Below, piece after piece: positions 1-64,000 of a DNA stretch of 64,000 nt. The stretch is from the sequence record NC_041878.1; one strand, 5' to 3'. The notes beneath the pieces are model-generated. The model was given only the letters and a program-made list of their open reading frames with translations. It made no database searches and was not told the DNA's origin. Positions within the stretch are counted from its first letter, which is position 1; each line of letters opens with the position of its first letter. A program made the position numbers and the translations under genes.

Positions 1-1
1 T

Positions 2-202
2 CATGACCATATTAAACAATCTATTTCAGGATTACATTCATTTGATTTAGAATACAAAGAACATGTTTACGATGGCAGTACTGAACCCTATACAATTAGA
101 TTAGTAAAAGGTACTGGTGAATGTATCAATCAAATGATTAAATATTATCCGTGGCTTGAAATAGAAGATGAATCTGTACAGGTCGAAGATCTACATGAAT
201 AA
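2..202 (+). CDS. Hypothetical protein, 3' part (runs off window start)
   Basis: Open frame from base 2 to TAA 200-202 (HDHIKQSISG...EDLHE); overlaps next ATG at 195. Confidence 0.6.
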   Translation, partial: HDHIKQSISGLHSFDLEYKEHVYDGSTEPYTIRLVKGTGECINQMIKYYPWLEIEDESVQVEDLHE

Positions 203-458
203 GAAAGCTAAGCAACGAATAATGAATAAATTAATCGAAGCTGAACCATCATTAAGTACTGACTATAAAAGACAGAATCGTTTTAAAAAGATTATTCTGA
301 TGAGTAGTAGATGTACTGGTGACAAGATGAATGAAGAACGTATACTTAATATGTTGCTTCGTCATATTGAAAATGCAAAACAGTTTCATGCAGCAATAGC
401 AAAAAGTGCAGTTCGTGAAGAACAATACTATGGTCTGTTGTGTGGTAAACCAAATTAG
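195..458 (+). CDS. Hypothetical protein
   Basis: ORF track 168..458; coupled ATG at 195 (MNKKAKQR). Confidence 0.6.
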   Translation: MNKKAKQRIMNKLIEAEPSLSTDYKRQNRFKKIILMSSRCTGDKMNEERILNMLLRHIENAKQFHAAIAKSAVREEQYYGLLCGKPN

Positions 459-628
459 TAACAAAGAGTGTAAGGGTTAGTACTCAGTATCATATTCCCC
501 CTCTGCCATCTTCCCCCATATGTTATGGGTTCTAGTCGCAGACACAGTTAGTACTTTGTTACTCGCGATTTTCCCGAAAGGGTGACGGTGTGAATAGTGC
601 ACATCACTGCTGTACGTGACAGTACAGA
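457..628 (+). ncRNA. Putative structured small RNA upstream of tRNA-Arg
   Basis: 10-bp stem AGTAACAAAG(457-466)/CTTTGTTACT(554-563), inner CCCATA/TATGGG hairpin, then hairpins CCC-GAAA-GGG, GGTGTG/CACATC and CTGTAC/GTACAG; no ORF. Confidence 0.5.
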
Positions 629-641
629 TTTTACAATAATT

Positions 642-717
642 GTTTGTGTAGCTCAGTTGGAATTAGAGCATTTGTCTACGAAACAAAGGGTCGCAGGTTC
701 GAGTCCTGCCATGAACA
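642..717 (+). tRNA. trnR: tRNA-Arg(ACG), CCA not encoded
   Basis: Cloverleaf: GTTTGTG/CATGAAC acceptor, TTTGT-CTACGAA-ACAAA anticodon arm, GCAGG-TTCGAGT-CCTGC T arm. Confidence 0.93.
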
Positions 718-739
718 CAAAATCTAAAGGATTAATGAA

Positions 740-958
740 ATGAGTAAATTACTAGACATGGTTAAAGACAAACACGTTAAGTTTAGCCATTATAAAGAAA
801 ACGAGTTATGGTACAGTACTGAATGCGGCTTTATGTTTCCGGTTCCGGTATCTGATACAGGTAACGCAGAATTTAAAAATGAAGACAAAGCCACGTTCTT
901 CATGCGTTGGATTCGTAAACATCTAGAAATGCTTACGAAAGAACAAGAAAATGCATGA
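740..958 (+). CDS. Conserved phage hypothetical protein
   Basis: AAGGA RBS; LWYxTxxGFxFPVPxxDxGxAxF...DKAxxFMRWIRK motif recalled from many phages. Confidence 0.75.
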   Translation: MSKLLDMVKDKHVKFSHYKENELWYSTECGFMFPVPVSDTGNAEFKNEDKATFFMRWIRKHLEMLTKEQENA

Positions 959-1301
959 TGAAACTTGGAAGGATTATCCCGATAAAAGGGATTTTCCATC
1001 CGAAGACCAATGGAAGAAGGTGCACTACGTACTCAATGTTTGCCAAACGGTAGGTGTTAAGTACTGTACATCGTACTTCACATATGAGTACTTTAGAAAG
1101 TACTGCTATGTACCGGATACGGGGTTTTGTTTTAACACACAATATGTGTATTTTGACGGAATTCCCCGATACATAGATAAAGTACATTCAGAAGAATCAT
1201 TCTTTCAGCAAAGTACTGTACATGATTATCATGATCTCACATTCGAAGAAATCATGATACTCAAAGAAATCTATGAATTTATAGTAGGGGATTTTCCGTA
1301 A
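951..1301 (+). CDS. Hypothetical protein
   Basis: 116-aa ORF overlapping the previous stop. Confidence 0.65.
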   Translation: MHDETWKDYPDKRDFPSEDQWKKVHYVLNVCQTVGVKYCTSYFTYEYFRKYCYVPDTGFCFNTQYVYFDGIPRYIDKVHSEESFFQQSTVHDYHDLTFEEIMILKEIYEFIVGDFP

Positions 1302-1331
1302 GGGAAATCCCTTTTTTCGTTTAGGGATTAT

Positions 1332-1727
1332 ATGGCAAGCTTAGTACAAAAATTTAAAGCATTTACTGATATATCAAGTAATGACATTACAAGAATCTAT
1401 GATGCTCTTTACATACAAAAAATATTAGTTAAGTTTCATCCTAATTTCACATTGTATGCAGATAGAGAAGATATTCTAATACTAGATGTTCAGCAAAAAG
1501 AAGTACTAACATATATTGAATTCCATGAGAATCATATGCTTGTTAATGTATCACGAGATTTCACGGATGACGAAGTAAACAGTGCTGAAGAATTTATTTT
1601 GAAGTACGATGCAACATCAGAATGGTTGTTCCAATTAAGTACTATTCACGATTTAGGATTTATTGAGAATCGTTATATGAAGTACTTGAATAAGTTACGT
1701 GACCTTTATAGTACTGACTATGATTAA
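1332..1727 (+). CDS. Hypothetical protein
   Basis: 131-aa ORF with AGGGA RBS. Confidence 0.7.
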   Translation: MASLVQKFKAFTDISSNDITRIYDALYIQKILVKFHPNFTLYADREDILILDVQQKEVLTYIEFHENHMLVNVSRDFTDDEVNSAEEFILKYDATSEWLFQLSTIHDLGFIENRYMKYLNKLRDLYSTDYD

Positions 1728-1730
1728 AAA

Positions 1731-1759
1731 TGAAACGAAAAAATAAACTATGGTATAAT
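1731..1759 (+). promoter_or_regulatory. TGAAAC-N17-TATAAT promoter (stable-RNA class)
   Basis: TGAAAC 1731-36, 17-nt spacer ending TGG, TATAAT 1754-59, directly upstream of tRNA-Pro. Confidence 0.7.
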
Positions 1760-1780
1760 GTAGTTAGAAAATAAAAAATT

Positions 1781-1852
1781 CTCCGGTTGGGTCAATGGTT
1801 GATCGCTTGTTTTGGGAACAAGAATATGGAAGTTCGATTCTTTCACTGGAGA
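1781..1852 (+). tRNA. trnP: tRNA-Pro(TGG) copy 1, CCA not encoded
   Basis: CTCCGGT/ACTGGAG acceptor, CTTGT-TTTGGGA-ACAAG anticodon arm, TTCGATT T loop. Confidence 0.88.
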
Positions 1853-1857
1853 CAAAA

Positions 1858-1933
1858 CGGGATGTAGCTCAGTTGATAGAGTGCGTCGTTTGGGGCGATG
1901 AAGCCGCTGGTTTGAGTCCAGCCATCCCGACCA
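1858..1933 (+). tRNA. trnP: tRNA-Pro(TGG) copy 2
   Basis: CGGGATG/CATCCCG acceptor, CGTCG-TTTGGGG-CGATG anticodon arm, ends ACCA. Confidence 0.93.
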
Positions 1934-1948
1934 ATTAAGGATAACATA

Positions 1949-2266
1949 ATGAAACGTAATAGACAAATGATATTGTCCAGTACTTCAGAAACCGATATTA
2001 AAGTTACAAGAATCAACCATCGTTATCATGCAAGATTATTCGTTAACGGTATATTCTCAGATGAAATGGCTTGTGAACTGCGTTCTGATATTGGATGGAT
2101 ATGCAGAGAAATGATGCGTTGGTGCGATAAGTTAGGTGCTGGTAATAATCATACTGATAGTGCTCGACGTAGACATAATAAAGATGATGCACCTCGCGGT
2201 AAAGTACTTTATTACGGTGAAATCCAAAACAATATTGAAAAACATAAAGCAAAGAAACAAAAATAA
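1949..2266 (+). CDS. Conserved phage hypothetical protein
   Basis: 105-aa ORF with AAGGA RBS between tRNA genes. Confidence 0.7.
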   Translation: MKRNRQMILSSTSETDIKVTRINHRYHARLFVNGIFSDEMACELRSDIGWICREMMRWCDKLGAGNNHTDSARRRHNKDDAPRGKVLYYGEIQNNIEKHKAKKQK

Positions 2267-2272
2267 TTCAAT

Positions 2273-2350
2273 GGTGACTATGAGCGTAACTGGCTAACGT
2301 TGGAGATTGTGAAACTCCTGATTCGGGTTCAAGCCCCGATAGTCACACCA
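2273..2350 (+). tRNA. trnH: tRNA-His(GTG) with encoded G-1 and A73
   Basis: G then GTGACTA/TAGTCAC acceptor, TTGTGAA anticodon loop, ends ACCA. Confidence 0.9.
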
Positions 2351-2369
2351 TATTTGATAAGGAAGTACT

Positions 2370-2621
2370 GTGGCAAGTTTAGATAAAATTCTCACTAAGA
2401 TGAGACAAAATAAAAGAGATTGGTCAATGCAAAGTTTGCTCACTGTAGCTAATAAGCTTAATATACCATACTCAAATTATAAATCAAGTCATTATATTTT
2501 CAAATATGATGGTATAGTTGAAAACCTGAGTATCCCCGAAAACAAAAAAGATATTCATCCAGACTATATCACAAAGTTTCTTAGATTCGTCGATAGAGTC
2601 CAGGAATTGCAAAGCGGTTGA
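2370..2621 (+). CDS. hicA: HicA-family toxin-like protein (no adjacent HicB)
   Basis: GTG start after AAGGA; SSHYIF...LSIP...IHPDYI matches the HicA dsRBD-like GSH motif pattern; 83 aa. Confidence 0.7.
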   Translation: MASLDKILTKMRQNKRDWSMQSLLTVANKLNIPYSNYKSSHYIFKYDGIVENLSIPENKKDIHPDYITKFLRFVDRVQELQSG

Positions 2622-2635
2622 AAAACCGCTAAAAT

Positions 2636-2712
2636 GGGTCGGTAACTCAGTTGGTCAGAGTGGTACACTGAAAATGTATTGGTCGCGAGTTCGAATCTCG
2701 CCCGTCCCACCA
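2636..2712 (+). tRNA. trnF: tRNA-Phe(GAA)
   Basis: GGGTCGG/CCGTCCC acceptor (one T:T), GTACA-CTGAAAA-TGTAT anticodon arm, TTCGAAT T loop, ACCA. Confidence 0.93.
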
Positions 2713-2720
2713 AAAAGTAC

Positions 2721-2749
2721 TTGACAAGCAGTACGTTAAGTGTTATCAT
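2721..2749 (+). promoter_or_regulatory. sigma70-like promoter
   Basis: TTGACA-N17-TATCAT. Confidence 0.7.
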
Positions 2750-2783
2750 GTGCAGGTTGAATCTTAAACAGGAATTAAACTTT

Positions 2784-3227
2784 ATGTCTGGTAAAATTAA
2801 AAGTACACTGAATTTTGTTAAAAGTTGGCCTACTGAGAATCGTCGTGAGGACACGCCCTTCACGATTCTCAGCAGTACCCAAGCTGAAGCGAATGCTGAA
2901 ATCACCAAAATCATGAATGCATGGGTCAGTACTGAAACTGATTCAGACGGTAAGATTGTTTATCAATGTTATCTTAAAAGCGTAAAGACTGAAGAAATTT
3001 ACGTTGCAAAACGTGTTCCAGTAACTTCTTTTGAGAAAGTACTGACGTATGAAGAACTGTTCGAATACATTGTTGAAAACAAAGTACGTCTGGTTCCATC
3101 TCCGTTAGTTTGGGAAACCGAAAATGGTGAACCTGCAACGTTCGTAACGCACGATGTATATTTCGATAAAGAACGTTATCAGGGTATGTCGGTATACGAC
3201 TGTATTCACACCCATTTAAACAAATAA
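2784..3227 (+). CDS. Hypothetical protein
   Basis: ORF 2679..3227; start moved to ATG 2784 behind AGGA because the upstream part overlaps tRNA-Phe and the promoter. Confidence 0.7.
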   Translation: MSGKIKSTLNFVKSWPTENRREDTPFTILSSTQAEANAEITKIMNAWVSTETDSDGKIVYQCYLKSVKTEEIYVAKRVPVTSFEKVLTYEELFEYIVENKVRLVPSPLVWETENGEPATFVTHDVYFDKERYQGMSVYDCIHTHLNK

Positions 3228-3270
3228 TAAAAATAAAATGGGGATAGATATTATCCCCTAACGGAACTTT

Positions 3271-3441
3271 ATGTTTGGTTTTTTTAGGAAGATCTTTTGT
3301 GGGCATTACGTGAGTATGGAAGTTTGTAAGATCCATTACTTACCTGGCAGTACTGAATTGATTTATACCAAAGTCTGTAAAGGTTGTGGAAAGAAGTTAG
3401 GTAACAGTACAACTAAACAAGTAGGCAAATATGAAAAATAA
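3271..3441 (+). CDS. Small Cys/His protein (FCGH...CxxC)
   Basis: 56-aa ORF read by eye: MFGFFRKIFCGH...VCKGCGKK. Confidence 0.55.
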   Translation: MFGFFRKIFCGHYVSMEVCKIHYLPGSTELIYTKVCKGCGKKLGNSTTKQVGKYEK

Positions 3442-3574
3442 GCAAGTTCCTTCGTATGAACCGGATGACGGTCCATTAACTCCTGAACAAATCGAAGCAA
3501 TACGTAAGCTAAGTGGTGCTTCACATTTAACCGAAGCTGATTTTAAAAATAGTCTATTCGATGAAAAAGAATAA
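3431..3574 (+). CDS. Small hypothetical protein
   Basis: 47-aa ORF read by eye: MKNKQVPSYEPDDGPLTPEQIEAIRK. Confidence 0.55.
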   Translation: MKNKQVPSYEPDDGPLTPEQIEAIRKLSGASHLTEADFKNSLFDEKE

Positions 3575-3809
3575 AGGTCTTTCGGACTTCATTCAAAGAG
3601 CCATGAACACTCCTGATATGATTCAGCGTGGTAAGATTCATGGTACTGATTCACAAATGCATCATAATTTATCTCGTAAAGAGATAATGAAACTTCTTGA
3701 TGCTGGTGATAAAGGTACTGATACAGAAATAACTGGCAGTACTTCAGAAGAAAGAAAATCAAGTTTACGCAGTATTCTTGATGAACAAAAAAAGAAAAAA
3801 GGTACTTAG
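3561..3809 (+). CDS. Hypothetical protein
   Basis: 82-aa ORF followed by AAAGGTAC/GTACCTTT terminator. Confidence 0.6.
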   Translation: MKKNKGLSDFIQRAMNTPDMIQRGKIHGTDSQMHHNLSRKEIMKLLDAGDKGTDTEITGSTSEERKSSLRSILDEQKKKKGT

Positions 3810-3821
3810 TACCTTTTTAAT

Positions 3822-3894
3822 ACCTCGTTAACTCAGTTGGTAGAGTAACGGTCTTTTAAACCGTGAGTGGTGTGTTCGATTCACACACGAGGTA
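3822..3894 (+). tRNA. trnK: tRNA-Lys(TTT), CCA not encoded
   Basis: ACCTCGT/ACGAGGT acceptor, ACGGT-CTTTTAA-ACCGT anticodon arm, TTCGATT T loop. Confidence 0.92.
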
Positions 3895-3916
3895 CAAATT
3901 ATAAAGGATATTATTA

Positions 3917-4393
3917 ATGGAACAAATTATAGAATTTATATCAACCACTCGTGCACGATGTGCAACATTGGTAGGTATACCAGCACCGTTTCCTAGAGGT
4001 TATGGTAATGTTTTATTTTTATACAGTCCAGATGGAACTACAAGATATTATGTAGAAAACTTATCATATGAAGATTTGAGGGATGCATTAAAATTAAATC
4101 TCATTGATGAAAATATAAAAGTTATAAGTACGGTGGTCGATGCCCCTGCACATCTTTGGGGTGAAACACCATGTGAAGTGTATAAAAATGTAATTGTAGT
4201 CGATTCAAGATTACCGAAAGAATGCTTGGGAAATTACGAAGAACAATTCTTAGATTTTCTATCTAAAGATATTGATGAACATCCTGAAAACGTTCGTCCA
4301 GTATCGAAAGAGTTATGGGAACACGTTGAACAATTAGTTCAGGGTGTTGAAGTTAATTTAGACGAACCATTGGAAGATGACGATGACTTTTGA
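3917..4393 (+). CDS. Hypothetical protein, paralog of 4377..4901
   Basis: Shares FPRGxGN...NLSYEDLxDA with the next gene. Confidence 0.75.
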   Translation: MEQIIEFISTTRARCATLVGIPAPFPRGYGNVLFLYSPDGTTRYYVENLSYEDLRDALKLNLIDENIKVISTVVDAPAHLWGETPCEVYKNVIVVDSRLPKECLGNYEEQFLDFLSKDIDEHPENVRPVSKELWEHVEQLVQGVEVNLDEPLEDDDDF

Positions 4394-4901
4394 AATGACA
4401 GTAGAACAAATTCCGGTATCAATTGGTAGCTCATCCTTAGTTGGGGTTTCATCTGAATTTCCACGTGGTCATGGTAACTATATTAGTACTTTCAAACGTA
4501 GTAATGTAGCTACGACATATGAAATAGTAAATCTATCATATGAAGATTTGGTAGATGCCATTCATAAAGGTATCATCGACACTAACACAATGGAAGCTGA
4601 AGTTTATCACATTTCAGAAACCATGAAAGTTGCTTTTGTTATCGATAAACGTTTTCCTCCAATCTGCTTAACTCCTGAATGGTTTTATGGTAATCGTTCA
4701 AAAGTTAAAGTTGATATTGTGCGGCGGAAATATAATGTACCAGAATTGGTATGTTCGTGTGAATATGAAGATTCACGCAATGCAGCTATTATGTACAATT
4801 ATTTTAGCTATAATATCCCTGATTGTATTGATATGAATGGTAAATGTATCGAATGTGGAACTTCCTATCGTTTAGTAAGGAAAAAGAATTATGAAGCCTG
4901 A
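4377..4901 (+). CDS. Hypothetical protein with C-terminal Cys motif, paralog of 3917..4393
   Basis: FPRGHGN...NLSYEDLVDA; CSC...CIECG tail. Confidence 0.75.
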   Translation: MTMTFEMTVEQIPVSIGSSSLVGVSSEFPRGHGNYISTFKRSNVATTYEIVNLSYEDLVDAIHKGIIDTNTMEAEVYHISETMKVAFVIDKRFPPICLTPEWFYGNRSKVKVDIVRRKYNVPELVCSCEYEDSRNAAIMYNYFSYNIPDCIDMNGKCIECGTSYRLVRKKNYEA

Positions 4902-5019
4902 ACAATGGATAATTGATGATATGCGAGCGATGCGAGCTATCAAAGAACGCACATATGAACAACAAGCGTACCTTGATTTGCTTCAATGGTACTGCTCAGT
5001 ACTGAACGGGAAAGCATAA
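4891..5019 (+). CDS. Small hypothetical protein
   Basis: 42-aa ORF MKPEQWIIDD..., translationally coupled to both neighbours. Confidence 0.5.
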   Translation: MKPEQWIIDDMRAMRAIKERTYEQQAYLDLLQWYCSVLNGKA

Positions 5020-5333
5020 TGAGTACTAATATCGTTTTACTTATCGTTTCGGGTATGCTGGTATTTGCTGCACTTCGTGTGTACTTCGGTCATAAGAAGA
5101 TCGTCAATGAACTGTACGCCCGACTTGTTGAAGATTCAGCAACTGCTGGTACAAAGAAAAGTCCATACACTATTCGCCGCCAACATAGTTCTTATTCTGG
5201 ACGTGATTACTATTACATCTATGAAGGTGATAATGTAGTTCAGACAAAGAACTTCTACACTGCAAAAGAAGCCCAAGTATCTATGAACGAATTAGAACAA
5301 TTGGGTGGATACCAGAAGACGAAGGTGGTATAA
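5019..5333 (+). CDS. Membrane-anchored protein, KSPY family 1/4
   Basis: N-terminal TM helix, KKSPY, C-terminal NELEQLGGYQKTKV. Confidence 0.75.
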   Translation: MSTNIVLLIVSGMLVFAALRVYFGHKKIVNELYARLVEDSATAGTKKSPYTIRRQHSSYSGRDYYYIYEGDNVVQTKNFYTAKEAQVSMNELEQLGGYQKTKVV

Positions 5334-5671
5334 TGACAGACATTCAAATATTAATGTTTTGTACTATAGTGGTTAGTATCTGTGCTTGTGTAATTCATAA
5401 CAGTACTAAAACAATTGCTGCACGTTTACATTGTCGTGCAATGGGTATTGAGTATGAAGCACCAAAATCTCTACCACATAGCCCCTATGGTGTAATTCAC
5501 ACTAATGCTAATGATGGTTCATGGGGATTTTGTGTTACAAAGAATGGAGAAATTTATCGTTCAAGTAAATATGCTTCTGCTCCAGTGTATAGCAACATTA
5601 AAAGTGCTATCACTGTAATGAACACATATGAAAAACTCGAAGGGTACAAAATAACTGTACTGGAGGATTAA
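5333..5671 (+). CDS. Membrane-anchored protein, KSPY family 2/4
   Basis: TM helix, HSPYG, GSWGFCVTKNGE, NTYEKLEGYKITV. Confidence 0.75.
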   Translation: MTDIQILMFCTIVVSICACVIHNSTKTIAARLHCRAMGIEYEAPKSLPHSPYGVIHTNANDGSWGFCVTKNGEIYRSSKYASAPVYSNIKSAITVMNTYEKLEGYKITVLED

Positions 5672-5988
5672 TGACAAGTACTTTAATTATTTGCTGTACA
5701 ATAGCTTTTTGTACTATTTGTTTGATGATTTGTAATGTACGAAAAGTAACAGCTAAGGTATATGCACAAGTTGCAACATACGATGCTTTACCAAAAAGCC
5801 CGTACAGTTTAATCCGAACAAAAAGTAGTTCAGGTGGTATTGGTTATAGCATTACAAAAAATGGTGAAATAATCTATATTCCTAGTACTGATGATAAACA
5901 GTATGAAGTGTTTGGTAGTTTATCTAATGCTATTTTTCATATTAATACCCTAGAAAAAATTGAAGGTTATCGTTTAACTCAAGTTTAA
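5671..5988 (+). CDS. Membrane-anchored protein, KSPY family 3/4
   Basis: TM helix, KSPYS, GIGYSITKNGE, NTLEKIEGYRLTQV. Confidence 0.75.
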   Translation: MTSTLIICCTIAFCTICLMICNVRKVTAKVYAQVATYDALPKSPYSLIRTKSSSGGIGYSITKNGEIIYIPSTDDKQYEVFGSLSNAIFHINTLEKIEGYRLTQV

Positions 5989-5997
5989 GGTATCATC

Positions 5998-6297
5998 ATG
6001 CAAATTATTGCTAGTATTGTGATCGCTGTGATTGTTATTTGTGTTATGGTGTACATGAACAAACGTACTGCTGCTAAATTGTATGCAGATTTAGTACTGG
6101 ATATTGATAAACCTGCAAGCCCATATGGTGTATCTCGTGAAATCTCTGAAGGTGGTTCATGGGGTTACTGTATCACTAAAGATGGTGAAGTAATGTATAG
6201 TGGTTCTAAAGCTAAGGTTTTTGATTCAGTTAATGCTGCTGTACGTGAAATTAATAAACTGGAAGCAGTACAAGGATTTAGGAAAACTCGTGTCTAA
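5998..6297 (+). CDS. Membrane-anchored protein, KSPY family 4/4
   Basis: TM helix, ASPYG, GSWGYCITKDGE, NKLEAVQGFRKTRV. Confidence 0.75.
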   Translation: MQIIASIVIAVIVICVMVYMNKRTAAKLYADLVLDIDKPASPYGVSREISEGGSWGYCITKDGEVMYSGSKAKVFDSVNAAVREINKLEAVQGFRKTRV

Positions 6298-6493
6298 ATT
6301 TAAATTTGGAAAATGCCCTCAGTGTGGCTGTACTGGTATTCATGCTTGCATGGGTAAGCCTTTGAAAAAAGGGGTTGACATGTCAGAGCATTCAATGTAT
6401 AGTACTTTGGAGGAAGCAATTGACCACATAAGAAAGTCAGAAGCTAAACGAAAAGGGGAACGTAAAAATGGCCGAAATGGTAGTAGTCGTTGA
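6290..6493 (+). CDS. Small putative Zn-binding protein
   Basis: GTG at 6290 after AGGA; CPQCGCTGIHAC. Confidence 0.6.
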   Translation: MSKFKFGKCPQCGCTGIHACMGKPLKKGVDMSEHSMYSTLEEAIDHIRKSEAKRKGERKNGRNGSSR

Positions 6494-6671
6494 GCACTAT
6501 GAAACACGGTACGGCTATGAAGAAAAACGTATCTTCAAAGCGTTTACCAACATTGCTTCATTTGAAGATTATTGTATCAAAAACGGCATCCAAATTTTAA
6601 AAGGTGCTTTCGGCACTACTTATTATGACGATGATTATAGTTACATTGTAAATCACGTGGAGTGTTTATAA
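6468..6671 (+). CDS. Hypothetical protein
   Basis: 67-aa ORF with GGGGA RBS. Confidence 0.6.
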   Translation: MAEMVVVVEHYETRYGYEEKRIFKAFTNIASFEDYCIKNGIQILKGAFGTTYYDDDYSYIVNHVECL

Positions 6672-6706
6672 TGAAAGATGAATTTCCTGACTACTAAGAG
6701 AAAACA

Positions 6707-7192
6707 ATGAAATTGAATCCAAACACCGTTATTAAAAAAGGTTTTGTAGTTGACATTTTTTCGTGGGAAAACGATGCTGACGATTATAAGCATACGATCA
6801 CTACAAGTCTAACTAAAGCCCAGGCTGATTTTCTGATCAACATTGCTCGTGCATTCATTTCTCGCAATGGTTCACGGATCAACCGTAATGCAAGTGGTTT
6901 TGGTAATAATGAAATCACTCCTGAAGTTGTTGCGTTTTTGGAAGAACAAGTTGAATCACTTGGTGATGAAAAAGATTCTATTATGGAACGCTTCGACCTT
7001 GAAGGTTATGAAGAATTCGGTGATTATGAATGGTTGGATTTCCTTCACGATTACGTACTTGGTTCACCAGTACAGTACGATGATGATTTTTGTCGTGTAG
7101 TTGAAACAATTGAACTGAAAGAACTGACAGAAGATTTTGTTGTTCCTGATTTCAATCCACCGTTCAAACGCATTAGTTCAGAAACTTTGTAA
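6707..7192 (+). CDS. Acidic hypothetical protein
   Basis: 161-aa ORF; followed by AGTGCTGCA/TGCAGTACT-TTT terminator. Confidence 0.7.
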   Translation: MKLNPNTVIKKGFVVDIFSWENDADDYKHTITTSLTKAQADFLINIARAFISRNGSRINRNASGFGNNEITPEVVAFLEEQVESLGDEKDSIMERFDLEGYEEFGDYEWLDFLHDYVLGSPVQYDDDFCRVVETIELKELTEDFVVPDFNPPFKRISSETL

Positions 7193-56763: not shown

Positions 56764-57639
56764 ATGGGTAAGTATATTTCGTGGGGTATCTTTGGGGTTA
56801 TCGCCCTTGCAGTAATGGCAGCGGTATTTGGTGCATCATTCACAGTAAAAGAAACTGAGCGTACTGTACTGTTGCGTAATGGTAAGTTCGTGGAAGTAGC
56901 ACAGCCGGGTTTTCACCTTAAAATGCCTTTCATTACTGACACAAAAGCAATTCAGGTAACAGGCGAATCCCGCCGTTGGGAAAAGCTACAAGCATATTCA
57001 CGCGATCAACAACCTGCGGATATGGCTGTATCTGTATCTTTCAACGTACAGCCTGGACAAGTCGAACAGTTATATAAAAAGTATAACAGCATTGACGCGA
57101 TGATTTCACGTGTAATTGATCGCCAGGTGCCGCAAGCACTGGAAAACGTTTTCGGCAAGTACACAGCAATTTCAGCAGTACAAGATCGTACTAAGCTGGT
57201 GGCTGATGTTAATAAAGCCGTTAAAGAAGCAATGGCTGATGAACCGGTAACAGTATCGAGCGTACAGATCGAAGGTCTATCCTTCTCTGATGCATACGAT
57301 AAAGCAGTTGAAGATCGTATGACTGCACAGGTTGCGGTTGAACAATCCCAGCAAGATCTGGAAAAAGCTAAGATCACTTCACAGATTGCACTGACTAACG
57401 CTAAAGCCGAAGCTGATGCAAACTTTGCGAAGTTAGACGCCGAAGCGAAAGGTATCAAAGCAAAAGGTGACGCCGAAGCATCTGCGATTAAAGCGAAAGG
57501 TGAAGCCCTTAAACAAGCTGGTGATACTTTAGTAGCATATATTTACGCTACTACGTGGAAAGGTAATTCACCTACTACCGTAGTGCCTAATACCTCCATC
57601 ACTGGCTTGAGTCTGCCAGGGCAGCAAAAGCCGCAATAA
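56764..57639 (+). CDS. SPFH/band 7 (prohibitin-like) membrane protein
   Basis: N-terminal TM, ERTVLLRNGK...PGFHLKMPF, FSDAYDKAVE, Ala-rich coiled coil. Confidence 0.92.
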   Translation: MGKYISWGIFGVIALAVMAAVFGASFTVKETERTVLLRNGKFVEVAQPGFHLKMPFITDTKAIQVTGESRRWEKLQAYSRDQQPADMAVSVSFNVQPGQVEQLYKKYNSIDAMISRVIDRQVPQALENVFGKYTAISAVQDRTKLVADVNKAVKEAMADEPVTVSSVQIEGLSFSDAYDKAVEDRMTAQVAVEQSQQDLEKAKITSQIALTNAKAEADANFAKLDAEAKGIKAKGDAEASAIKAKGEALKQAGDTLVAYIYATTWKGNSPTTVVPNTSITGLSLPGQQKPQ

Positions 57640-57778
57640 GTACTGAATACTACAAAAGCCTAGCAATGTCTAGGCTTTTTTATATTTCGAAAAATATACT
57701 TTCAAACGTGAAAAGTACTTGCACAAAATGATCTGATGTAGTATTATCTTTATATCGACAACGAACAAGGAGAAACAA

Positions 57779-57976
57779 ATGGAACAACATTATGTACATA
57801 TCCCTAGCCCTCTGTTGTTTTCGAGAGAAGCTAGATTGTCTCGCATTAAGTACTTGAGCAAGGCAAAGGCAAGTACTGAGAAAGAAGATCGTGAATGGAA
57901 CTTGATTATGGCGAAGATGATGAAGCGTCATGAAAAGCAATGGATGGAAGTTTACAAAGAAGACTTTCTGAAGTAA
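57779..57976 (+). CDS. Small early protein
   Basis: AGGAG RBS, own promoter. Confidence 0.65.
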   Translation: MEQHYVHIPSPLLFSREARLSRIKYLSKAKASTEKEDREWNLIMAKMMKRHEKQWMEVYKEDFLK

Positions 57977-58054
57977 ACATTATCAAAAGTACTTTGACAA
58001 AATGGTTAGAGTACTTTATAATGATTACATCAACCACTAAGAAGGAATGTACAA

Positions 58055-58249
58055 ATGACTACTGAAGAATGGCGTAAACTTTCTCTGCAAACATCAATAA
58101 CTGAGAAAGAAAAACAGCAGAAGACTATGTTTAATAGACGTTTGAAGTATCCCCCAAGAAGTGAATTACGTCGCTTGTGCGTTCAATATTCATGGTGGTT
58201 TCGTCACGAATTAAATGATTTTCGTGTACGTTTGGCAAAAATTCAGTAA
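58055..58249 (+). CDS. Small basic early protein
   Basis: AAGGA RBS, own promoter. Confidence 0.6.
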   Translation: MTTEEWRKLSLQTSITEKEKQQKTMFNRRLKYPPRSELRRLCVQYSWWFRHELNDFRVRLAKIQ

Positions 58250-58322
58250 ACATTATCAAAAGTACTTTACTTAATTGATAGAGTACTTTATAATGATTAC
58301 ATCAAATAATGAGGAAATTGAA

Positions 58323-58646
58323 ATGAGAAATTTATTATTAGTACTGGCGGCATTTGGTACAGGTTTAATGTGTGGGAAGTTTATCTACAAAGAGAATATC
58401 TCGTTTGACTTGTTTAGTGAAACAAAGTATACTTGTTCATACAAAGCTTACAGTGAAGAATTACTTCCAATATCAGACAGTAATACTTATACTGAAAAAG
58501 AGTTGAAGAAGTATCAAGAAGGTGATAGTATTATGGGAATGAAGATTGTTAGATTGTTTCCATTCCCTGATGCGTACAGTATGTTTGTACAATCAAATAC
58601 GAATCCTGAACACAGTATTTTAATTAAGTGCGAGAAGAAAAAATGA
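58323..58646 (+). CDS. Membrane-anchored/secreted protein
   Basis: GAGGA RBS; N-terminal hydrophobic segment. Confidence 0.65.
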   Translation: MRNLLLVLAAFGTGLMCGKFIYKENISFDLFSETKYTCSYKAYSEELLPISDSNTYTEKELKKYQEGDSIMGMKIVRLFPFPDAYSMFVQSNTNPEHSILIKCEKKK

Positions 58647-59032
58647 AAACTTACGAACAACTGAAAGGTGTAGCTGGTAAGATTGTTGACAACATTCAAA
58701 AGAACAGAATCAATGAAGCAGTATTCACTACTGTAACAGGCCGCAAAACTAAAGCTATAGAGTTGGGTACTTTGGTCGGTATGGTATCTGCGGCATGTTG
58801 TGAACGCAAGATTGATACTGCGATCTTGGAATTGTACTTGCGTAATGTTCATGGGTTTGAATATCGCGGTGTCCGTAACATGAGCAATGCAATGTTGGAC
58901 GCATACGCAATTAAAGTACTTTCACATTGTGGTGATAAAGTTTTACGGTCTGGACACTTCAAAAAGATTGAAGAACTCGCCGCACAAAATACACCAGTAG
59001 ATGAAGCAGCAAAAATCATCTTAGCAATGTAA
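58643..59032 (+). CDS. Hypothetical protein
   Basis: ATGA overlap with previous stop. Confidence 0.7.
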   Translation: MKTYEQLKGVAGKIVDNIQKNRINEAVFTTVTGRKTKAIELGTLVGMVSAACCERKIDTAILELYLRNVHGFEYRGVRNMSNAMLDAYAIKVLSHCGDKVLRSGHFKKIEELAAQNTPVDEAAKIILAM

Positions 59033-59103
59033 TTATTATCAAAAGTACTTTGACAAATAAGTTAGAGTACTTTATAATGATTATATTCAACGAGGGGAAT
59101 ATA

Positions 59104-59295
59104 ATGAGCAAACAATTTACTCATGCACCAAAAGCTGGTGGTGGTTATGAAATCATGTTCGGTAATAATGTGATCGATAGTGCTGATACTTTAAAAGAAG
59201 CACGTAATAAAATTGCAAAGTTCAAACGTGAAATGAAATTTTCTAATCTGGTGAATAAGTACTTTAATTATTCAGACAACTTAAAGAAAAAATAG
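59104..59295 (+). CDS. Small early protein
   Basis: GAGGGG RBS, own promoter. Confidence 0.6.
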   Translation: MSKQFTHAPKAGGGYEIMFGNNVIDSADTLKEARNKIAKFKREMKFSNLVNKYFNYSDNLKKK

Positions 59296-59357
59296 CTTGC
59301 ATCACTCGTAATTATGAAGTATAATCTTTACATCAACCACTAAGAAGGAACAACAAA

Positions 59358-59744
59358 ATGTTTACTACTCATTACTTTGAAACAAGAACCCTGGCTCGTA
59401 ACAACGTTGCTGTACTGAACGGTAAATTCAAAGACTTCGGTACTGATGCACCGAAAGGCCAGCGTTGGGCTGTATTGGTTGAAGCACAAGAAGCACAACC
59501 AGTGCCGGAAGTCAAAGAAGAAATTAAAATCGAACAAGCAACAACTGATAATTCTTCTGTCAGTACTTCCATCAAAGATCTGCATGTTGCCGCCATTGCA
59601 AATGCTATGCCAAACGTATCCTTTACGCCAGGTATGAAACGCCGCGACGATCTGAAAACGCCTAATGGTAAGCCTGTACGCCTCATGGTACGTCGTTCGA
59701 TGGTGGCTGTACGGTTGGCTCAACATATGGCTAACTACGCTTAA
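59358..59744 (+). CDS. Conserved phage hypothetical protein
   Basis: FETRTLAR...KFKDFGTDAPKGQRWAV; AAGGA RBS. Confidence 0.7.
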   Translation: MFTTHYFETRTLARNNVAVLNGKFKDFGTDAPKGQRWAVLVEAQEAQPVPEVKEEIKIEQATTDNSSVSTSIKDLHVAAIANAMPNVSFTPGMKRRDDLKTPNGKPVRLMVRRSMVAVRLAQHMANYA

Positions 59745-59863
59745 AATTCGATTGGGGGCTTATATGCCCCCATAATTAAGTAAGGATAATACCATATGCC
59801 AATTACTCCAGTTGTTTTGTTAATTGTGGTGTGTATAATAATTTTTATATTGTTGAGGCCGCG

Positions 59864-60106
59864 ATGAAAAAGATGGTAATTGATAATACACAATTACGCA
59901 TACACTTTAAAGCAAGTACTAAAGTACTGGACAAAGCATTAAGGGTTGTGCGAGAATATACAAAAGGTGAAGTTAGACCGAGGCGATTAGGTTGTGGATT
60001 GTTTGAAGTACTGGACGTTTCGCATAATGAGCGAATCGTAATTCAAAACAGTAAACTTAACTTAATGACTCATGAACAATATAATAAGTTCGTTGAACGC
60101 CGTTGA
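59864..60106 (+). CDS. ParE/RelE-like toxin-fold protein
   Basis: PRRL...LDV...RIV...LMTHEQYNK resembles ParE-like small proteins; GAGG RBS. Confidence 0.45.
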   Translation: MKKMVIDNTQLRIHFKASTKVLDKALRVVREYTKGEVRPRRLGCGLFEVLDVSHNERIVIQNSKLNLMTHEQYNKFVERR

Positions 60107-60162
60107 CATAATCCCCTAAATATGATTATAATAAATTTATAGTCATTAGGGGATTTTTTATT

Positions 60163-60681
60163 ATGCCAGGAACATTCCGCAGTAAAAATAGTGCTACCCT
60201 AGCAGGTCACTCTGATAAATGGAGTAACTCTAATCGTAGTGCGTCAAGTCATGATGCTGGTCAAGGTAGTAGAGGAAGCCGAAACCAGGGAACAGGTATT
60301 CAAGGGAAACTAAACACTATGCCATCACAAGGCGTAGACACTTCCAAAATGAAACCAGAAGAAAAGTTAAAGTACTTTAAATCGTTGGGGTTAATGCCTG
60401 GTGCAGAACCTACACCAGAACCAGAAGTACAACCTGAACCAAAACCAGAACGTAACAAAGTACAAGCATTAACGCAAGACCTACAGAAAGTATTTGCTAA
60501 CACTCCAAACTATCTGCATAGTATTGTACAGCAGCTTAAAGAAGTGCCACCAGCACAATTTAAAAAAGCTGTATTCGCGGCGTATCGTGCAATGCAAGAA
60601 GCTACAGCACAAGCAAACGTAGATCCTAAAGCAGTACTTAAACATATAGAAGATGCAATTAACCAAAGTATCTACGATTAA
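60163..60681 (+). CDS. Hypothetical protein with disordered Gly/Ser N-terminus, probably late
   Basis: TAAATA at 60117-22; AGGGGA RBS; PE repeats. Confidence 0.7.
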   Translation: MPGTFRSKNSATLAGHSDKWSNSNRSASSHDAGQGSRGSRNQGTGIQGKLNTMPSQGVDTSKMKPEEKLKYFKSLGLMPGAEPTPEPEVQPEPKPERNKVQALTQDLQKVFANTPNYLHSIVQQLKEVPPAQFKKAVFAAYRAMQEATAQANVDPKAVLKHIEDAINQSIYD

Positions 60682-60744
60682 TATTTGACAGTACTCAATT
60701 CATCTGATAGTATTAAGTTATTCCAAACAACAAGGTACTATCAA

Positions 60745-61083
60745 ATGAAAAGAATTTTATTAGTCGGACTTCTGTTTGCAAGTACTGTTAACGCTCAAAT
60801 GTTAACTTGCTCTAACAGTACTCTTTCTTTTCGTAATAACGATGGAAGTTATAGCGAAAAGGTAGCAACAAAACTTTCAAACATCAACGTAGAAGTACTG
60901 GAACAAGCTATAACGTTCTATGCTGGTGGAATTGATAAACTGGAATTTTGGAAAGATTACAATGAGTATCGTAATGATACTGGTAAGGTAGTTCGCTCAG
61001 GTGATACTTTTTCATTGTATACCACTATTCCAACTGATACAAATAAAATGCAGCCTGTTAAAGTTGATTATGTCTGCAAATAA
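60745..61083 (+). CDS. Secreted hypothetical protein
   Basis: Signal peptide MKRILLVGLLFASTVNA; two Cys. Confidence 0.7.
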   Translation: MKRILLVGLLFASTVNAQMLTCSNSTLSFRNNDGSYSEKVATKLSNINVEVLEQAITFYAGGIDKLEFWKDYNEYRNDTGKVVRSGDTFSLYTTIPTDTNKMQPVKVDYVCK

Positions 61084-61136
61084 ATTCAAATAAAAGGTTG
61101 ACTTCGGTCGGCCTTTTTTGTTATACTTACTTTATT

Positions 61137-61169
61137 GGCAGATAAGCCGTTAGCCCATTGGGTGCGGAG
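61137..61169 (+). repeat. Two-hairpin element copy 8
   Basis: GGC-AGATAA-GCC + GCCCATTGGGTGCGGAG; TTGACT at 61098. Confidence 0.85.
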
Positions 61170-61325
61170 TTATGTCATTTTTAAGTACTTTCTATTTTGA
61201 AAATATTATACAAAAACTTATAAAAAGTCCTTGCAGATAATTCTGATTCTGCTATTATAACCACATCAAGACGGGGCAACGTCTTAGAAAACAAAATTCA
61301 AATATTAAGTGAGAGGCAGTACAAA

Positions 61326-61673
61326 ATGACTAAATCAATCAAAGTTAAAGCTACTAAATCAGTTCAGGCAAACAACGTAGAAAACATTAAAAGACTGCCT
61401 ATTGGTACTGTAGTAGTTCATAACTATGGTGAGTTTACCCACGGTGTAATTGTAGGTCATGCAGAACATGCTTACCAGGTTTATTTTAGTGCTGATATGT
61501 CACCGATGCTTCCAAAGTATCAGGCTAATACCGATGAAGCAATTAAAGCACGTATGCGTACTATTACCCTGGGCAAAGGATTCTTTGTAAGTCGCTTCAA
61601 AACAATTGAAGCAGTTCGTGAAGCACAACGCAAATATAAAAATCGTGGTCTGGATCTCGAATCAGCAGCGTAA
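61326..61673 (+). CDS. Hypothetical early protein
   Basis: GAGG RBS, own promoter. Confidence 0.7.
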   Translation: MTKSIKVKATKSVQANNVENIKRLPIGTVVVHNYGEFTHGVIVGHAEHAYQVYFSADMSPMLPKYQANTDEAIKARMRTITLGKGFFVSRFKTIEAVREAQRKYKNRGLDLESAA

Positions 61674-61763
61674 TTGAATTTAAAAAGGAGTTGACAACAG
61701 TTGGCTCCTTTGCTATACTACCCATAAGAACTTAATTGAAGTACTTTTTAAAGGCATATCATC

Positions 61764-61982
61764 ATGAGAAACATTTTAGAAGAACTCCTTAAAGAACCAA
61801 CCGAAGAAGAAATGCAAGCCAGTGCAGTACTGCGTGATCTCTGTATTCAAAATGAGCTTGAGTTTCCTGAACAATTGTTCATGTTGCAGTATTTTGCAGG
61901 TATTGAACCAGGTCTGATCGTTTCAAAGGTGAACGCATTAAACACGCCTTTGATTGAAAATGCAATACACGTAATGCACTAA
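61764..61982 (+). CDS. Small acidic protein
   Basis: 72 aa, own promoter. Confidence 0.6.
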   Translation: MRNILEELLKEPTEEEMQASAVLRDLCIQNELEFPEQLFMLQYFAGIEPGLIVSKVNALNTPLIENAIHVMH

Positions 61983-62037
61983 TTAATTCTACAAAGTACT
62001 TGACTCCGGTTGAGTACTTTAGTATTATATATTCATT

Positions 62038-62068
62038 GGCAGATAAGCCGTTACCTACAAGGTGCATA
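62038..62068 (+). repeat. Two-hairpin element copy 9 (degenerate, compensatory)
   Basis: GGC-AGATAA-GCC + ACCT-ACA-AGGTGCATA; TTGACT-N17-TATTAT (62000-28). Confidence 0.7.
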
Positions 62069-62190
62069 ATTGTATCTGTATAAAAGAAAATATAAATTCA
62101 AATAAAAAACTTGCATTTATCCGTCAGTACTGTATAATGATTTACATGGATTAGGGAATGGCCTTAATCATTTTAAGTGAGAATACTATC

Positions 62191-62760
62191 ATGAAATTTG
62201 AAGAACTGAACGAGCAACAAAAAGCTAGAGCACTTGACAAACATCGTTATATTAACGTTGATTATGACGAATGGCATGATTTTGTCAAAGACGATCATCA
62301 TTCGAAACTGGAAGCCGTTGGTTTTGAAGGCGTAGAGTCGCGTTACAGTGGTTTTTGTTCCCAGGGCGACGGGGCAAGTTTTCTTGCAAGTAACGTTGAC
62401 ATTGAGAAGTTTCTGCGTTCACAAAAACGTTGGACGCATTATCGTGCCTTGCATGAGTTTATTCGTATCAATGAGATCACGGCGAAAGTAGTTGCGTTAC
62501 CTTCTCATTACGTACACTACAATACAACTCAAGCGGAGTTATCAGGCGATTGGTATATTGATTTTACTCCTAAGCAGGAAGCACTATATAAAGAACTCGA
62601 AGAAGAGATCGACGCATATATCACACAAGCGGGTAAAGATTATTACGCTGATCTTGAAACTGCGTACTACGATCTTACCAGTGACGAACAAGTAGAACAA
62701 ACAATCATCGCGAATGATTTAGATTTTGAAGAAACAGATCATTCAGTAACTTATCTTTGA
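62191..62760 (+). CDS. Conserved acidic phage/plasmid protein (YSGFxSQGDGASF family)
   Basis: SGFCSQGDGASF motif; homologs recalled as being annotated antitoxin-like. Confidence 0.65.
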   Translation: MKFEELNEQQKARALDKHRYINVDYDEWHDFVKDDHHSKLEAVGFEGVESRYSGFCSQGDGASFLASNVDIEKFLRSQKRWTHYRALHEFIRINEITAKVVALPSHYVHYNTTQAELSGDWYIDFTPKQEALYKELEEEIDAYITQAGKDYYADLETAYYDLTSDEQVEQTIIANDLDFEETDHSVTYL

Positions 62761-62964
62761 CAAGTACTAAAACTTTATGATATAGTACTCGCATAGAAAA
62801 AAACACGAGCAAACAACTATGCGAGTACTTAAATCACATAACGATATAATTTTCGCTACTTATGGCGATTGTTATATGGTTAAAAAAGGGAGGATGAAAA
62901 TAGTTTGTAATAATCCCGTAATTGCTTTATACTATTACTGTAAACTTTTAAGTGAGAATATAAA

Positions 62965-63297
62965 ATGAGAAAACCTAACGTAGAAATTCTTTGTGATTCG
63001 CATCATGGTGTACATATCCCGTCCATCATGATTCAACGTCTGGTAGATGCAGGTTGGCGAAACATTCCCGCCGATGCCGTAGAAGTACTTTCTTCCGTAG
63101 ACAATGAAGGTTATTGGGATTGTTGGGAAGAAGTACTTAACAATGCAGAATGGCATGATGCAAGTACTGGTCAAGTATTCAAGTTGCACCAGGACGGCGA
63201 TCTGTTTGCTTATTGCAAGGATAGTATGACTCCGCAAGAGTATCATCATATGTTTGGTGAATATCCAGACTGGTACAATCAGGAAGAAGAAGCATAA
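62965..63297 (+). CDS. Conserved phage hypothetical protein
   Basis: HGVHIP...YWDCWEEVL.NA...LHQDGDLF. Confidence 0.7.
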   Translation: MRKPNVEILCDSHHGVHIPSIMIQRLVDAGWRNIPADAVEVLSSVDNEGYWDCWEEVLNNAEWHDASTGQVFKLHQDGDLFAYCKDSMTPQEYHHMFGEYPDWYNQEEEA

Positions 63298-63350
63298 TTA
63301 AATTTAAAAAGTACTTGACTCCGGTCAGGTACTTTGCTATTATGTATACA

Positions 63351-63387
63351 TAGCAAGAACAATGCTTTAGCCCATAGGGTGCAGGAG
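63351..63387 (+). repeat. Two-hairpin element copy 10
   Basis: AGC-AAGAACAAT-GCT + GCCCATAGGGTGCAGGAG; TTGACT-N17-TATTAT (63315-43). Confidence 0.8.
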
Positions 63388-63506
63388 TGTAGTTATAGTA
63401 TAAGGATGTAGTACTGAAAGAAATATAAAGTTAAATGAAAAATTCCCTTGCTTTCTTTCTTTCGTGTGGTATACTTTAGTTATTGAAACAGAGCGGAGTT
63501 TGAAAA

Positions 63507-63749
63507 ATGTCTAAATCAGGAATCGAATTTAAAGTGCGGAAATGGTCTGAGCATGGTGCAAGACGCCCATTCGATGTAGTAGCACTGGATCACGACAACA
63601 ACAAACAGCACTACCAGCCAGGCTGCACTTTCAGTACTGAGGATGGGGCAGAGCGTCACGCTCAAGTACTGGCACAGCGTATTAAAGACAATGCAAACAC
63701 TATTAAGTTTATTCGTGATTGCTGGCCTGTAGACGGCGGGATCGAATAA
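63507..63749 (+). CDS. Hypothetical early protein
   Basis: GGAG RBS, own promoter. Confidence 0.7.
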   Translation: MSKSGIEFKVRKWSEHGARRPFDVVALDHDNNKQHYQPGCTFSTEDGAERHAQVLAQRIKDNANTIKFIRDCWPVDGGIE

Positions 63750-63828
63750 AAATTCAAATGAAAAAGTACTGGACAATCTAAGTTTAGTACTTTATAATTT
63801 AAATACAAAACGAATTGAGGAACTGATT

Positions 63829-64000
63829 ATGTTGAAAATGTATAAAGGTATCAATGGCTTGGCACTGAAAGCTAACCGTCCACTGAACAGAACTGAACTG
63901 TTAGAAGTTGTACCTTCAATTTTCGCTATCGAAGGGCATTCTTCACGTAGTTCACGTTTTGCACCAGTTGCTACTATCGACGTGGTAGACCGCCTGGCAC
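63829..64000 (+). CDS. DUF932/DUF945-family protein, 5' part
   Basis: PL...EL...PSIFA...HxSRSxRF...TI.V..RL; runs off the window end. Confidence 0.7.
   Translation, partial: MLKMYKGINGLALKANRPLNRTELLEVVPSIFAIEGHSSRSSRFAPVATIDVVDRLA

Follow-up and report, generated by a model that had tools for sequence, protein, structure and literature searches.

The DNA studied here, a window of 64,000 bases, shows 100% identity to positions 310001-374000 of the record of Pectobacterium phage vB_PcaM_CBB (KU574722.1 / NC_041878.1, genus Mimasvirus), and the palindrome AGTACT is its top-ranked hexamer. CBB belongs to the 'Rak2-like' jumbo myoviruses; its genome measures 355.9 kb and has, in addition, a direct terminal repeat of 22,456 bp. 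Its architecture is T4-like (PMC5259590). Nearly all genes lie on one strand. The left end (1-10600) is a dense cluster of transfer RNA (tRNA) genes with very small open reading frames in between, and AGTACT directly follows several of the tRNA 3' ends (2716, 10554). The right end belongs to the terminal repeat, which carries dozens of tiny genes of unknown function. Two features set the frame for what follows:

1-64000, no strand assigned: 277 dispersed AGTACT sites, with 186 inside coding sequences, 90 non-coding and 1 across a boundary
45924-64000, plus strand: first 18 kb of the right-hand copy of the 22,456-bp terminal repeat (repeat_region annotation)

Size of the AGTACT excess and selection on DNA

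Base composition predicts 21.5 copies of AGTACT in the window, so that the observed 277 exceed expectation about 13 times. The guanine-plus-cytosine (GC) content behind this figure is 36.0%; the initial annotation, which had put it near one third, was roughly right and slightly too low. In 100 dinucleotide-preserving shuffles the count was 19.0 +/- 4.2, with a maximum of 33. Markov models of orders 2 and 3 raise the expectation to 47 and 116, respectively, and AGTACT ranks first among hexamers under base composition, dinucleotides and Markov orders 1-3. The remaining strongly over-represented hexamers all overlap it (GTACTG, CAGTAC, AAGTAC, GTACTT). GTAC is up 3-fold and NGTACN words are up about 2-fold, save CGTACG and GGTACC, which are absent. 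The window-wide excess had first been noticed from 17 copies in bases 1-2721, a count that is exact (about 0.9 are expected there). It outlives codon and dinucleotide correction, and no unrelated hexamer is equally enriched.

AGTACT is denser in non-coding than in coding DNA (7.5 versus 3.6 per kb), and denser in the repeat part of the window than in positions 1-45800 (6.8 versus 3.3 per kb). The 243.9 kb of unique CBB sequence that we sampled (69% of the unique genome) contain 829 copies, at 3.1 per kb outside the repeat and 6.4 inside it. In the 50-kb sample of Escherichia coli K-12 that served as the host contrast there are 3 (0.06 per kb), and the phage DNA is thus about 50 times richer.

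Gene-level counts were made on the 132 annotated coding sequences of the window. As the initial annotation had claimed, AGTACT occurs in every coding frame, 85 times as Ser-Thr, 73 times as x-Val-Leu and 28 times as K/Q/E-Tyr-x. After synonymous-codon shuffling, 38.4 +/- 5.8 of these 186 sites would be expected (maximum 55), and after shuffling of codon order 22.5 +/- 4.5. Ser-Thr dipeptides are written AGT-ACT in 63% of cases, against 16% expected, and 65% of Val-Leu dipeptides are encoded GTA-CTN. The dipeptides themselves are too frequent: Ser-Thr occurs 135 times for 75 expected (1.8 times) and Val-Leu 146 times for 99 (1.5 times), and the reverse pairs show no excess (Thr-Ser 66 versus 75, Leu-Val 93 versus 99). 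Over all three frames, 186 of the 303 positions at which the protein permits AGTACT are filled (61%). Selection on AGTACT therefore acts on the DNA, overriding synonymous codon choice and shifting dipeptide usage. The excess persists in both the Markov-corrected hexamer counts and the synonymous-codon test that had been proposed as checks, and the shuffles and the realised opportunities show a selected DNA-level feature rather than a by-product of codon or dinucleotide usage.

These counts bear directly on two other explanations. The first derives the enrichment, as a by-product, from recurring promoters and terminators that contain AGTACT, or from the usage of codons and dipeptides. Of the 90 non-coding sites, about 55 do lie in promoter-like contexts, and the dual-site promoters described below form a family of similar cassettes. 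However, two thirds of the sites are intragenic, at five-fold the codon-shuffled expectation, and late structural genes are enriched too. The intragenic sites have a weak preference for C before and G after, with nothing further by way of sequence context. Shuffles, intragenic sites and late genes together rule out such a side effect as a full explanation, and we give it next to no credence. The second places the function in RNA, with AGUACU as the site of an RNA-binding protein or RNase, or as a self-complementary builder of hairpins. With nearly all genes on one strand there would be about one site per 300-nt stretch of mRNA, and AGTACT pairs do form hairpins and terminators. Yet the perfect two-fold symmetry, together with the weakly symmetric flanks, points to duplex DNA, transcripts started at a promoter do not include the sites upstream of its -10 and -35 hexamers, and minus-strand genes are similarly enriched (2.8 per kb, versus 3.7 on the plus strand). 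We put very little weight on an RNA-level unit.

Phages are textbook avoiders of short palindromes. In the window, 29 of the 64 palindromic hexamers are missing, for a summed expectation of 174 occurrences, and GCGC is found 0 times for 66 expected; it is also absent from every relative sampled. In the pooled CBB loci, with most of the terminal repeat entering twice, there are 0 CTTAAG for 88 expected, 2 GATATC for 88 and 0 GCGC for 266. The E. coli K-12 sample contains 342 GCGC (6.8 per kb). The AGTACT excess thus stands in a genome that otherwise avoids restriction-type palindromes very strongly, as the initial annotation had supposed. The clade-wide loss of GCGC points to intense restriction pressure, or else to a phage nuclease acting on GCGC in host DNA. 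The relatives share the avoidance, with some host-specific differences: Klebsiella phages have 27 GATATC for 15 expected, and 10 GGTACC for 3, where CBB has 0 for 27. GATC is avoided solely in E. coli phage EC.P1 (0.33x).

Conservation, spacing and clade distribution

Individual AGTACT sites are conserved between phages. In alignments of CBB with GAP32, 66 of 93 CBB sites are kept, compared with 30% (sigma-factor region) and 47% (repeat) of control hexamer windows of equal flank identity. Against Serratia phage BF, 60% of sites are conserved for 20% of controls, and against a metagenomic relative 45% for 17%. The sites are also spaced more evenly than chance would place them. Outside the repeat, the gaps between successive copies have a coefficient of variation (CV) of 0.85 (n=684; 0.72-0.84 in single regions), with 0.99 +/- 0.08 for random placement and 1.07-1.34 for other abundant hexamers. 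Gaps below 25 bp are too few (24 versus 51), as are gaps above 1.5 kb (2 versus 6.5). In three shorter samples from relatives the CV is near 1 and the regularity is not significant.

A neutral, sequence-specific drive, such as very-short-patch-type mismatch repair or another templated conversion, would fill synonymous opportunities and mimic conservation while leaving AGTACT without function. It should do so at the expense of the one-mismatch neighbours, and these are not depleted (0.66-2.5x; AGTATT/AATACT 1.23x, AGTTCT 1.27x, AGCACT 1.82x). No Vsr-like gene lies beside either cytosine methyltransferase, the flanking genes having no Pfam domain. Repair drive is disfavoured on these two grounds. 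The more-than-random evenness of the spacing, the shift in amino-acid usage, and the fixed positions in one promoter class but not in others also count against it, and we regard it as very unlikely.

The enrichment extends well beyond the window. Five further pieces of CBB have AGTACT up 6.7-16 fold, and the late structural genes are enriched as well (tail sheath 3.4 per kb, tail fibre 3.0 per kb). Samples of 12-24 kb from each relative, spanning three genera, gave 6-19 fold enrichment in GAP32, BF, Yersinia phage fHe-Yen9-04 and four metagenomic genomes (355-371 kb), and likewise in Klebsiella phages KP13-7, RCIP0023 and RaK2 and E. coli phages EC.P1 and fEgEco12. AGTACT was the first or second hexamer in every relative where hexamers were ranked. 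Chromosomal samples of the relatives have about 2-3.4 copies per kb at GC 30-40%, and the RaK2 early region and the fEgEco12 repeat have 6.3-6.5. The clade thus carries about 3 sites per kb of chromosome and 6-7 in the terminal repeat. A T4-like phage is not enriched (4 AGTACT versus 6.2 expected, 0.7x), nor is a KVP40-like phage (0 versus 3.8). A search with the tail sheath returned a discrete group of 72 records with at least 60% identity over most of the length. AGTACT is a selected cis-element of the whole Rak2-like clade, in effect a phage 'highly iterated palindrome'. The initial annotation was right about the enrichment in the window and missed both this clade-wide extent and the fixed promoter position described below.

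A scan of IMG/VR for three close AGTACT gave, among the matches listed, mostly chance hits and coding tandem repeats; dispersed enrichment appeared among them only in RaK2 and one Rak2-like-looking fragment. In seven contigs the clusters are in-frame tandem repeats, for example ACC-AGT-ACT-TCC, whose units are spaced by multiples of 18 or 30 bp and encode Ser/Thr-rich repeat proteins. These contigs are mostly much smaller than Rak2-like genomes and lack the genome-wide signature. A full-text literature search found no paper linking AGTACT to Rak2-like phages, and a text search of the CBB, RaK2 and fEgEco12 papers turned up no account of it. In the supplement of the CBB paper, AGTACT appears only within listed terminator sequences, and the promoter table gives other promoters.

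Promoters, leader and hairpins

Many AGTACT pairs 21-22 bp apart are parts of predicted sigma70-type promoters, which bears out the claim that the motif is present in promoters. In the dual-site form, ATTATCAAA-AGTAC abuts TTGACA (or TTGCAA), and after the spacer comes AGTACT-T-TATAAT. All promoters here are consensus predictions from their -35 and -10 match. The following predicted promoters of the window are of this form, all in the repeat:

50884-50916, plus strand: predicted dual-AGTACT promoter, AGTAC abutting TTGCAA, spacer, AGTACT-A-TATAAT
51416-51449, plus strand: predicted dual-AGTACT promoter
51617-51649, plus strand: predicted dual-AGTACT promoter, -35 TTGCAT
51917-51951, plus strand: predicted dual-AGTACT promoter, perfect TTGACA-17-TATAAT
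52933-52966, plus strand: predicted dual-AGTACT promoter
53175-53208, plus strand: predicted dual-AGTACT promoter
53430-53463, plus strand: predicted dual-AGTACT promoter
54862-54896, plus strand: predicted dual-AGTACT promoter, perfect TTGACA-17-TATAAT
55441-55474, plus strand: predicted dual-AGTACT promoter
55721-55754, plus strand: predicted dual-AGTACT promoter
57988-58022, plus strand: predicted dual-AGTACT promoter, perfect consensus hexamers
58261-58294, plus strand: predicted dual-AGTACT promoter
59044-59078, plus strand: predicted dual-AGTACT promoter, perfect consensus hexamers
63765-63798, plus strand: predicted dual-AGTACT promoter

Two predicted promoters outside the repeat have the -35-abutting copy only:

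2716-2749, plus strand: predicted non-repeat promoter, AAAAAGTAC abutting TTGACA, then TATCAT
19524-19557, plus strand: predicted non-repeat promoter

The association was measured on promoters chosen solely by their match to TTGACA-16/18-TATAAT, the position of AGTACT being scored afterwards. In the CBB repeat, 15 of 36 such promoters have a copy positioned 1-2 nt upstream of the -10 (at -19 to -14); the corresponding figures are 14 of 22 for the RaK2 early region and 18 of 39 for the fEgEco12 repeat. This amounts to 40-64% of terminal-repeat or early promoters across three genera. Usually another copy directly adjoins the -35 as well, a pairing seen in 30-50% of promoters. Near the -10 there is none in 33 promoters of the window's non-repeat early region and none in 21 of the late region (0/54). 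As in sigma70 operators, AGTACT thus has a fixed position that overlaps RNA polymerase contacts in a defined promoter class. On these predictions, it flanks the core elements of the terminal-repeat promoters, which would be the first to enter the cell. The exact dual-site pattern was found in only eleven large contigs of IMG/VR. Nine of them, CBB, GAP32, BF and fHe-Yen9-04 included, measure 354-378 kb; the other two, at 109 and 203 kb, are probably pieces of such genomes.

AGTACT is also dense in a leader across the repeat boundary, and occurs in hairpin arms:

45465-47349, no strand assigned: 1.9-kb non-coding leader across the repeat boundary, with 17 AGTACT (9 per kb)
7962-8004, plus strand: hairpin with 12-bp arms containing AGTACT, -15.8 kcal/mol, z = -5.1
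56094-56117, plus strand: terminator hairpin AGTACTGG...CCAGTACT followed by a U run, -12 kcal/mol ('Torf26' in the supplement of the CBB paper)
61995-62018, plus strand: AGTACT-armed hairpin enclosing a TTGACT -35, a combined terminator and promoter, -15.4 kcal/mol, z = -5.2

The first two of these hairpins had already been noticed as carrying AGTACT in their arms, and both bear this out. Coliphage fEgEco12 has an equivalent gene-free leader of 1.7 kb (1-1688 of the sampled locus), also with 17 AGTACT. Such a gene-free, AGTACT-packed leader, with which the terminal repeat starts in both phages, could hold packaging, ejection or replication signals.

Here the evidence touches a further reading, in which AGTACT stimulates recombination or replication, like Chi or like the cyanobacterial palindrome HIP1 in transformation, and serves recombination-dependent replication or recombination between the terminal repeats. 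The T4-like architecture with its long terminal repeat would suit this (PMC5259590), as would the fact that AGTACT is densest in the terminal repeat and the leader. More sites are apparently better, 61% of the free opportunities being used. HIP1 is reported to raise transformation in a homology- and methylation-dependent way (PMC13756078). On the other hand, a palindrome has no polarity, unlike Chi or uptake signals, and the fixed positions beside the -35 and -10 hexamers are left unexplained. We consider the recombination reading improbable.

A second promoter class of the window has the form AAAAAGGGG-TTGACT-TCGGTCAGCCCC-TTTTTGT-TATAAT, with the -35 inside a GC-rich terminator hairpin, and the T run of the terminator is the spacer of the next promoter:

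about 24096-24136, 24633-24673, 25388-25428 and 33337-33376, plus strand: second-class promoter cassettes
about 52408-52447, 54332-54371, 61088-61128 and 61681-61720, plus strand: second-class promoter cassettes

Candidate readers and significance

Some factor very probably reads AGTACT. The reading we favour, and of which we are about half convinced, is that AGTACT is a clade-wide element read by a symmetric protein encoded by the clade, which marks phage DNA and controls the immediate-early promoters. The palindrome would be recognised by a symmetric, dimeric protein that binds or modifies DNA and that every member of the clade encodes. A classical helix-turn-helix repressor would suit a perfect 6-bp palindrome less well than an enzyme-like reader or one of the ribbon-helix-helix type. 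The reader would occupy or mark phage DNA about every 300 bp. Seated on the two promoter copies, which overlap the contacts of RNA polymerase, it would also control the terminal-repeat immediate-early promoters, most likely by shutting them off.

Several points weigh against this reading. No AGTACT-reading protein was found among the candidates examined. One of these, gp468, is the only helix-turn-helix regulator of the window and is encoded beside the sigma-factor gene, and it was rejected for want of conservation across the clade. There is no signal that a lost site is offset by a nearby gain, in an underpowered set of 27. In RaK2 and fEgEco12 the two promoter copies stand 20 bp apart, in CBB 21-22 bp, so that each copy is anchored to its own hexamer and not to the other copy. 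Such anchoring is compatible with an intrinsic promoter element too, and speaks against a rigid dimer of dimers. Finally, many strong promoters of the window are without AGTACT, notably the hairpin-type class.

Genome-coating phage proteins such as TF1 of SPO1 and p6 of phi29 also repress early promoters. The proposed reader would resemble them in being abundant, binding the whole chromosome, preferring phage DNA and shutting early promoters. TF1 recognises DNA containing hydroxymethyluracil and p6 recognises DNA shape or supercoiling, whereas the proposed reader would recognise a hexamer. The comparison is one of mode of working and not of family membership, no such protein having been identified in Rak2-like phages.

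ScaI targets AGTACT, and ScaI-type modification yields N4-methylcytosine (m4C). The same sequence and a CBB enzyme that methylates cytosine at N4 invite comparison; restriction targets are normally avoided or neutral, however, while AGTACT is enriched and the methylase is absent from enriched sister genera. A reading that we think unlikely makes AGTACT primarily a methylation target, on which a phage methyltransferase writes a dense epigenetic mark. The mark would protect or identify phage DNA, and the terminal-repeat promoters would become methylation-sensitive: active on virion DNA, which would be fully methylated, and silent on freshly replicated DNA, or the other way round. The candidate writers are gp157 (N4-cytosine) and CBB_72 (PF05869, adenine), from the three DNA methyltransferases that CBB encodes (PMC5259590). 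Two orphan methylases recognise HIP1 (PMC4390886, PMC13756078), and the more than 1,000 ScaI sites per genome would need protection wherever ScaI-type restriction is met.

Among solved structures, M.PvuII is the closest to gp157, a beta-class N4-cytosine methyltransferase (E = 3.6e-20). Homologues of gp157 with at least 85% identity occur only in the CBB/GAP32/BF/Yersinia/Erwinia/XbC2 subclade, the next best match being a Cellulophaga phage protein with 53% identity. The Klebsiella and E. coli Rak2-like phages outside this subclade are equally enriched in AGTACT, and gp157, confined as it is to one subclade, cannot be the clade-wide cause; as a universal cause it was rejected. Homologues with about 50% identity are orphan enzymes in prophage-like contexts, with no nuclease, ScaI-type or other, adjoining. 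Named homologues gave orphan methylases only, and in the gene neighbourhoods examined no nuclease stands beside gp157 or its homologues that could make a ScaI-like pair with the methylase. Comparing palindrome avoidance in genomes with and without gp157 gave no clear target, TCGCGA being weakly suggestive in an underpowered test. The C5-cytosine methylase CBB_399 has 74-76% identical homologues in E. coli jumbo phages of about 350 kb. Bisulfite analysis of RaK2, whose cytosine methylase may be an orthologue of CBB_399, detected cytosine methylation at CpG (PMC3622015), a dinucleotide lacking in AGTACT, and CBB_399 was set aside as reader on this account. CBB_72 is a small PF05869 adenine methyltransferase with 41-46% identical homologues in RaK2, K64-1, KP13-7, Munch and EJP2. 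The family is present clade-wide, which favours the methylation reading, but its clade members are no closer to CBB_72 than are the enzymes of unrelated phages. Methylation removes site avoidance, and does not on its own explain a 13-fold enrichment. The initial annotation had proposed a phage-encoded protein or methylase that reads AGTACT; selection on the DNA itself upholds the idea in part, but no AGTACT-reading protein was found among the candidates and gp157 belongs to one subclade only.

Two host systems were tried and rejected. The SlmA site of enterobacteria, with the consensus GTGAGTACTCAC, has AGTACT as its central six bases, and the phage hosts have SlmA. The required flanks are not enriched, however (GTnAGTACT 44 versus 50, AGTACTnAC 29 versus 45, the full site 1 versus 2.7). 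As for the LexA (SOS) box, there are only five TACTG-N10-CAGTA, all in the repeat, and they cannot explain single AGTACT sites. The five are formed by AGTACT pairs 18 bp apart, at 46145, 52687, 54426, 56096 and 56114; the pairs at 46145 and 56114 also hold CTGT-N8-ACAG (starting at 46165 and 56116).

Among known systems, uptake signals (uptake signal sequences and DNA uptake sequences) and Chi are words over-represented across the genome, with about one per kb, which label DNA as 'self' for a dedicated machine, and uptake sequences also occur as inverted pairs in terminators. They are asymmetric and orientation-dependent, with known readers, whereas AGTACT is symmetric; being its own reverse complement, it was rejected as a polar motif of this type. 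HIP1 (GCGATCGC, cyanobacteria) is closer. Like AGTACT, it is a short perfect palindrome in many-fold excess, found in all frames and between genes, at about one copy per gene. The precedent, invoked from the start, holds: AGTACT is over-represented after correction (in all frames and intergenic DNA after codon correction) and conserved at orthologous positions, as HIP1 is (PMC5861425). HIP1 is also non-randomly spaced, with a reported periodicity of 10-90 kb; for AGTACT our comparison covers short-range spacing, which is more even than random in CBB but has a CV near 1 in three relatives. The function of HIP1 is unresolved, selection rather than neutral repair having been inferred (PMC5861425, PMC4390886, PMC13756078). 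AGTACT differs in being a 6-mer rather than an 8-mer, in marking a virus lineage rather than a cellular phylum, in its fixed positions in a specific promoter class, in having no cognate methylase shown, and in a genome otherwise purged of nearly half of the palindromic hexamers.

Rak2-like phages appear to do without T4-type cytosine replacement: no hydroxymethylase or glucosyltransferase genes were found (PMC5259590, PMC3622015). On a further reading, possible but doubtful, phage identity would instead be written in the sequence as a two-word code, dense AGTACT being the positive mark and the absence of GCGC the negative one. If this is true, phage readers would use the two words to tell phage from host DNA, and the code would serve host shut-off or degradation, the coating or protection of the chromosome, and the timing of immediate-early promoters.

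For practical purposes, ScaI or RsaI would cut Rak2-like genomes into fragments of about 300 bp, and the AGTACT-rich, GCGC-free signature identifies Rak2-like fragments in metagenomes. The phages also provide a small and rapid model for asking what HIP1 and other highly iterated palindromes are for, a question that is 30 years old. One near-saturated palindrome amid extreme avoidance of others points to a strong, unexplained selection across about 70 sequenced giant phages, and gives a direct experimental handle on the factor that binds or modifies it and on the otherwise opaque biology of the terminal repeat.

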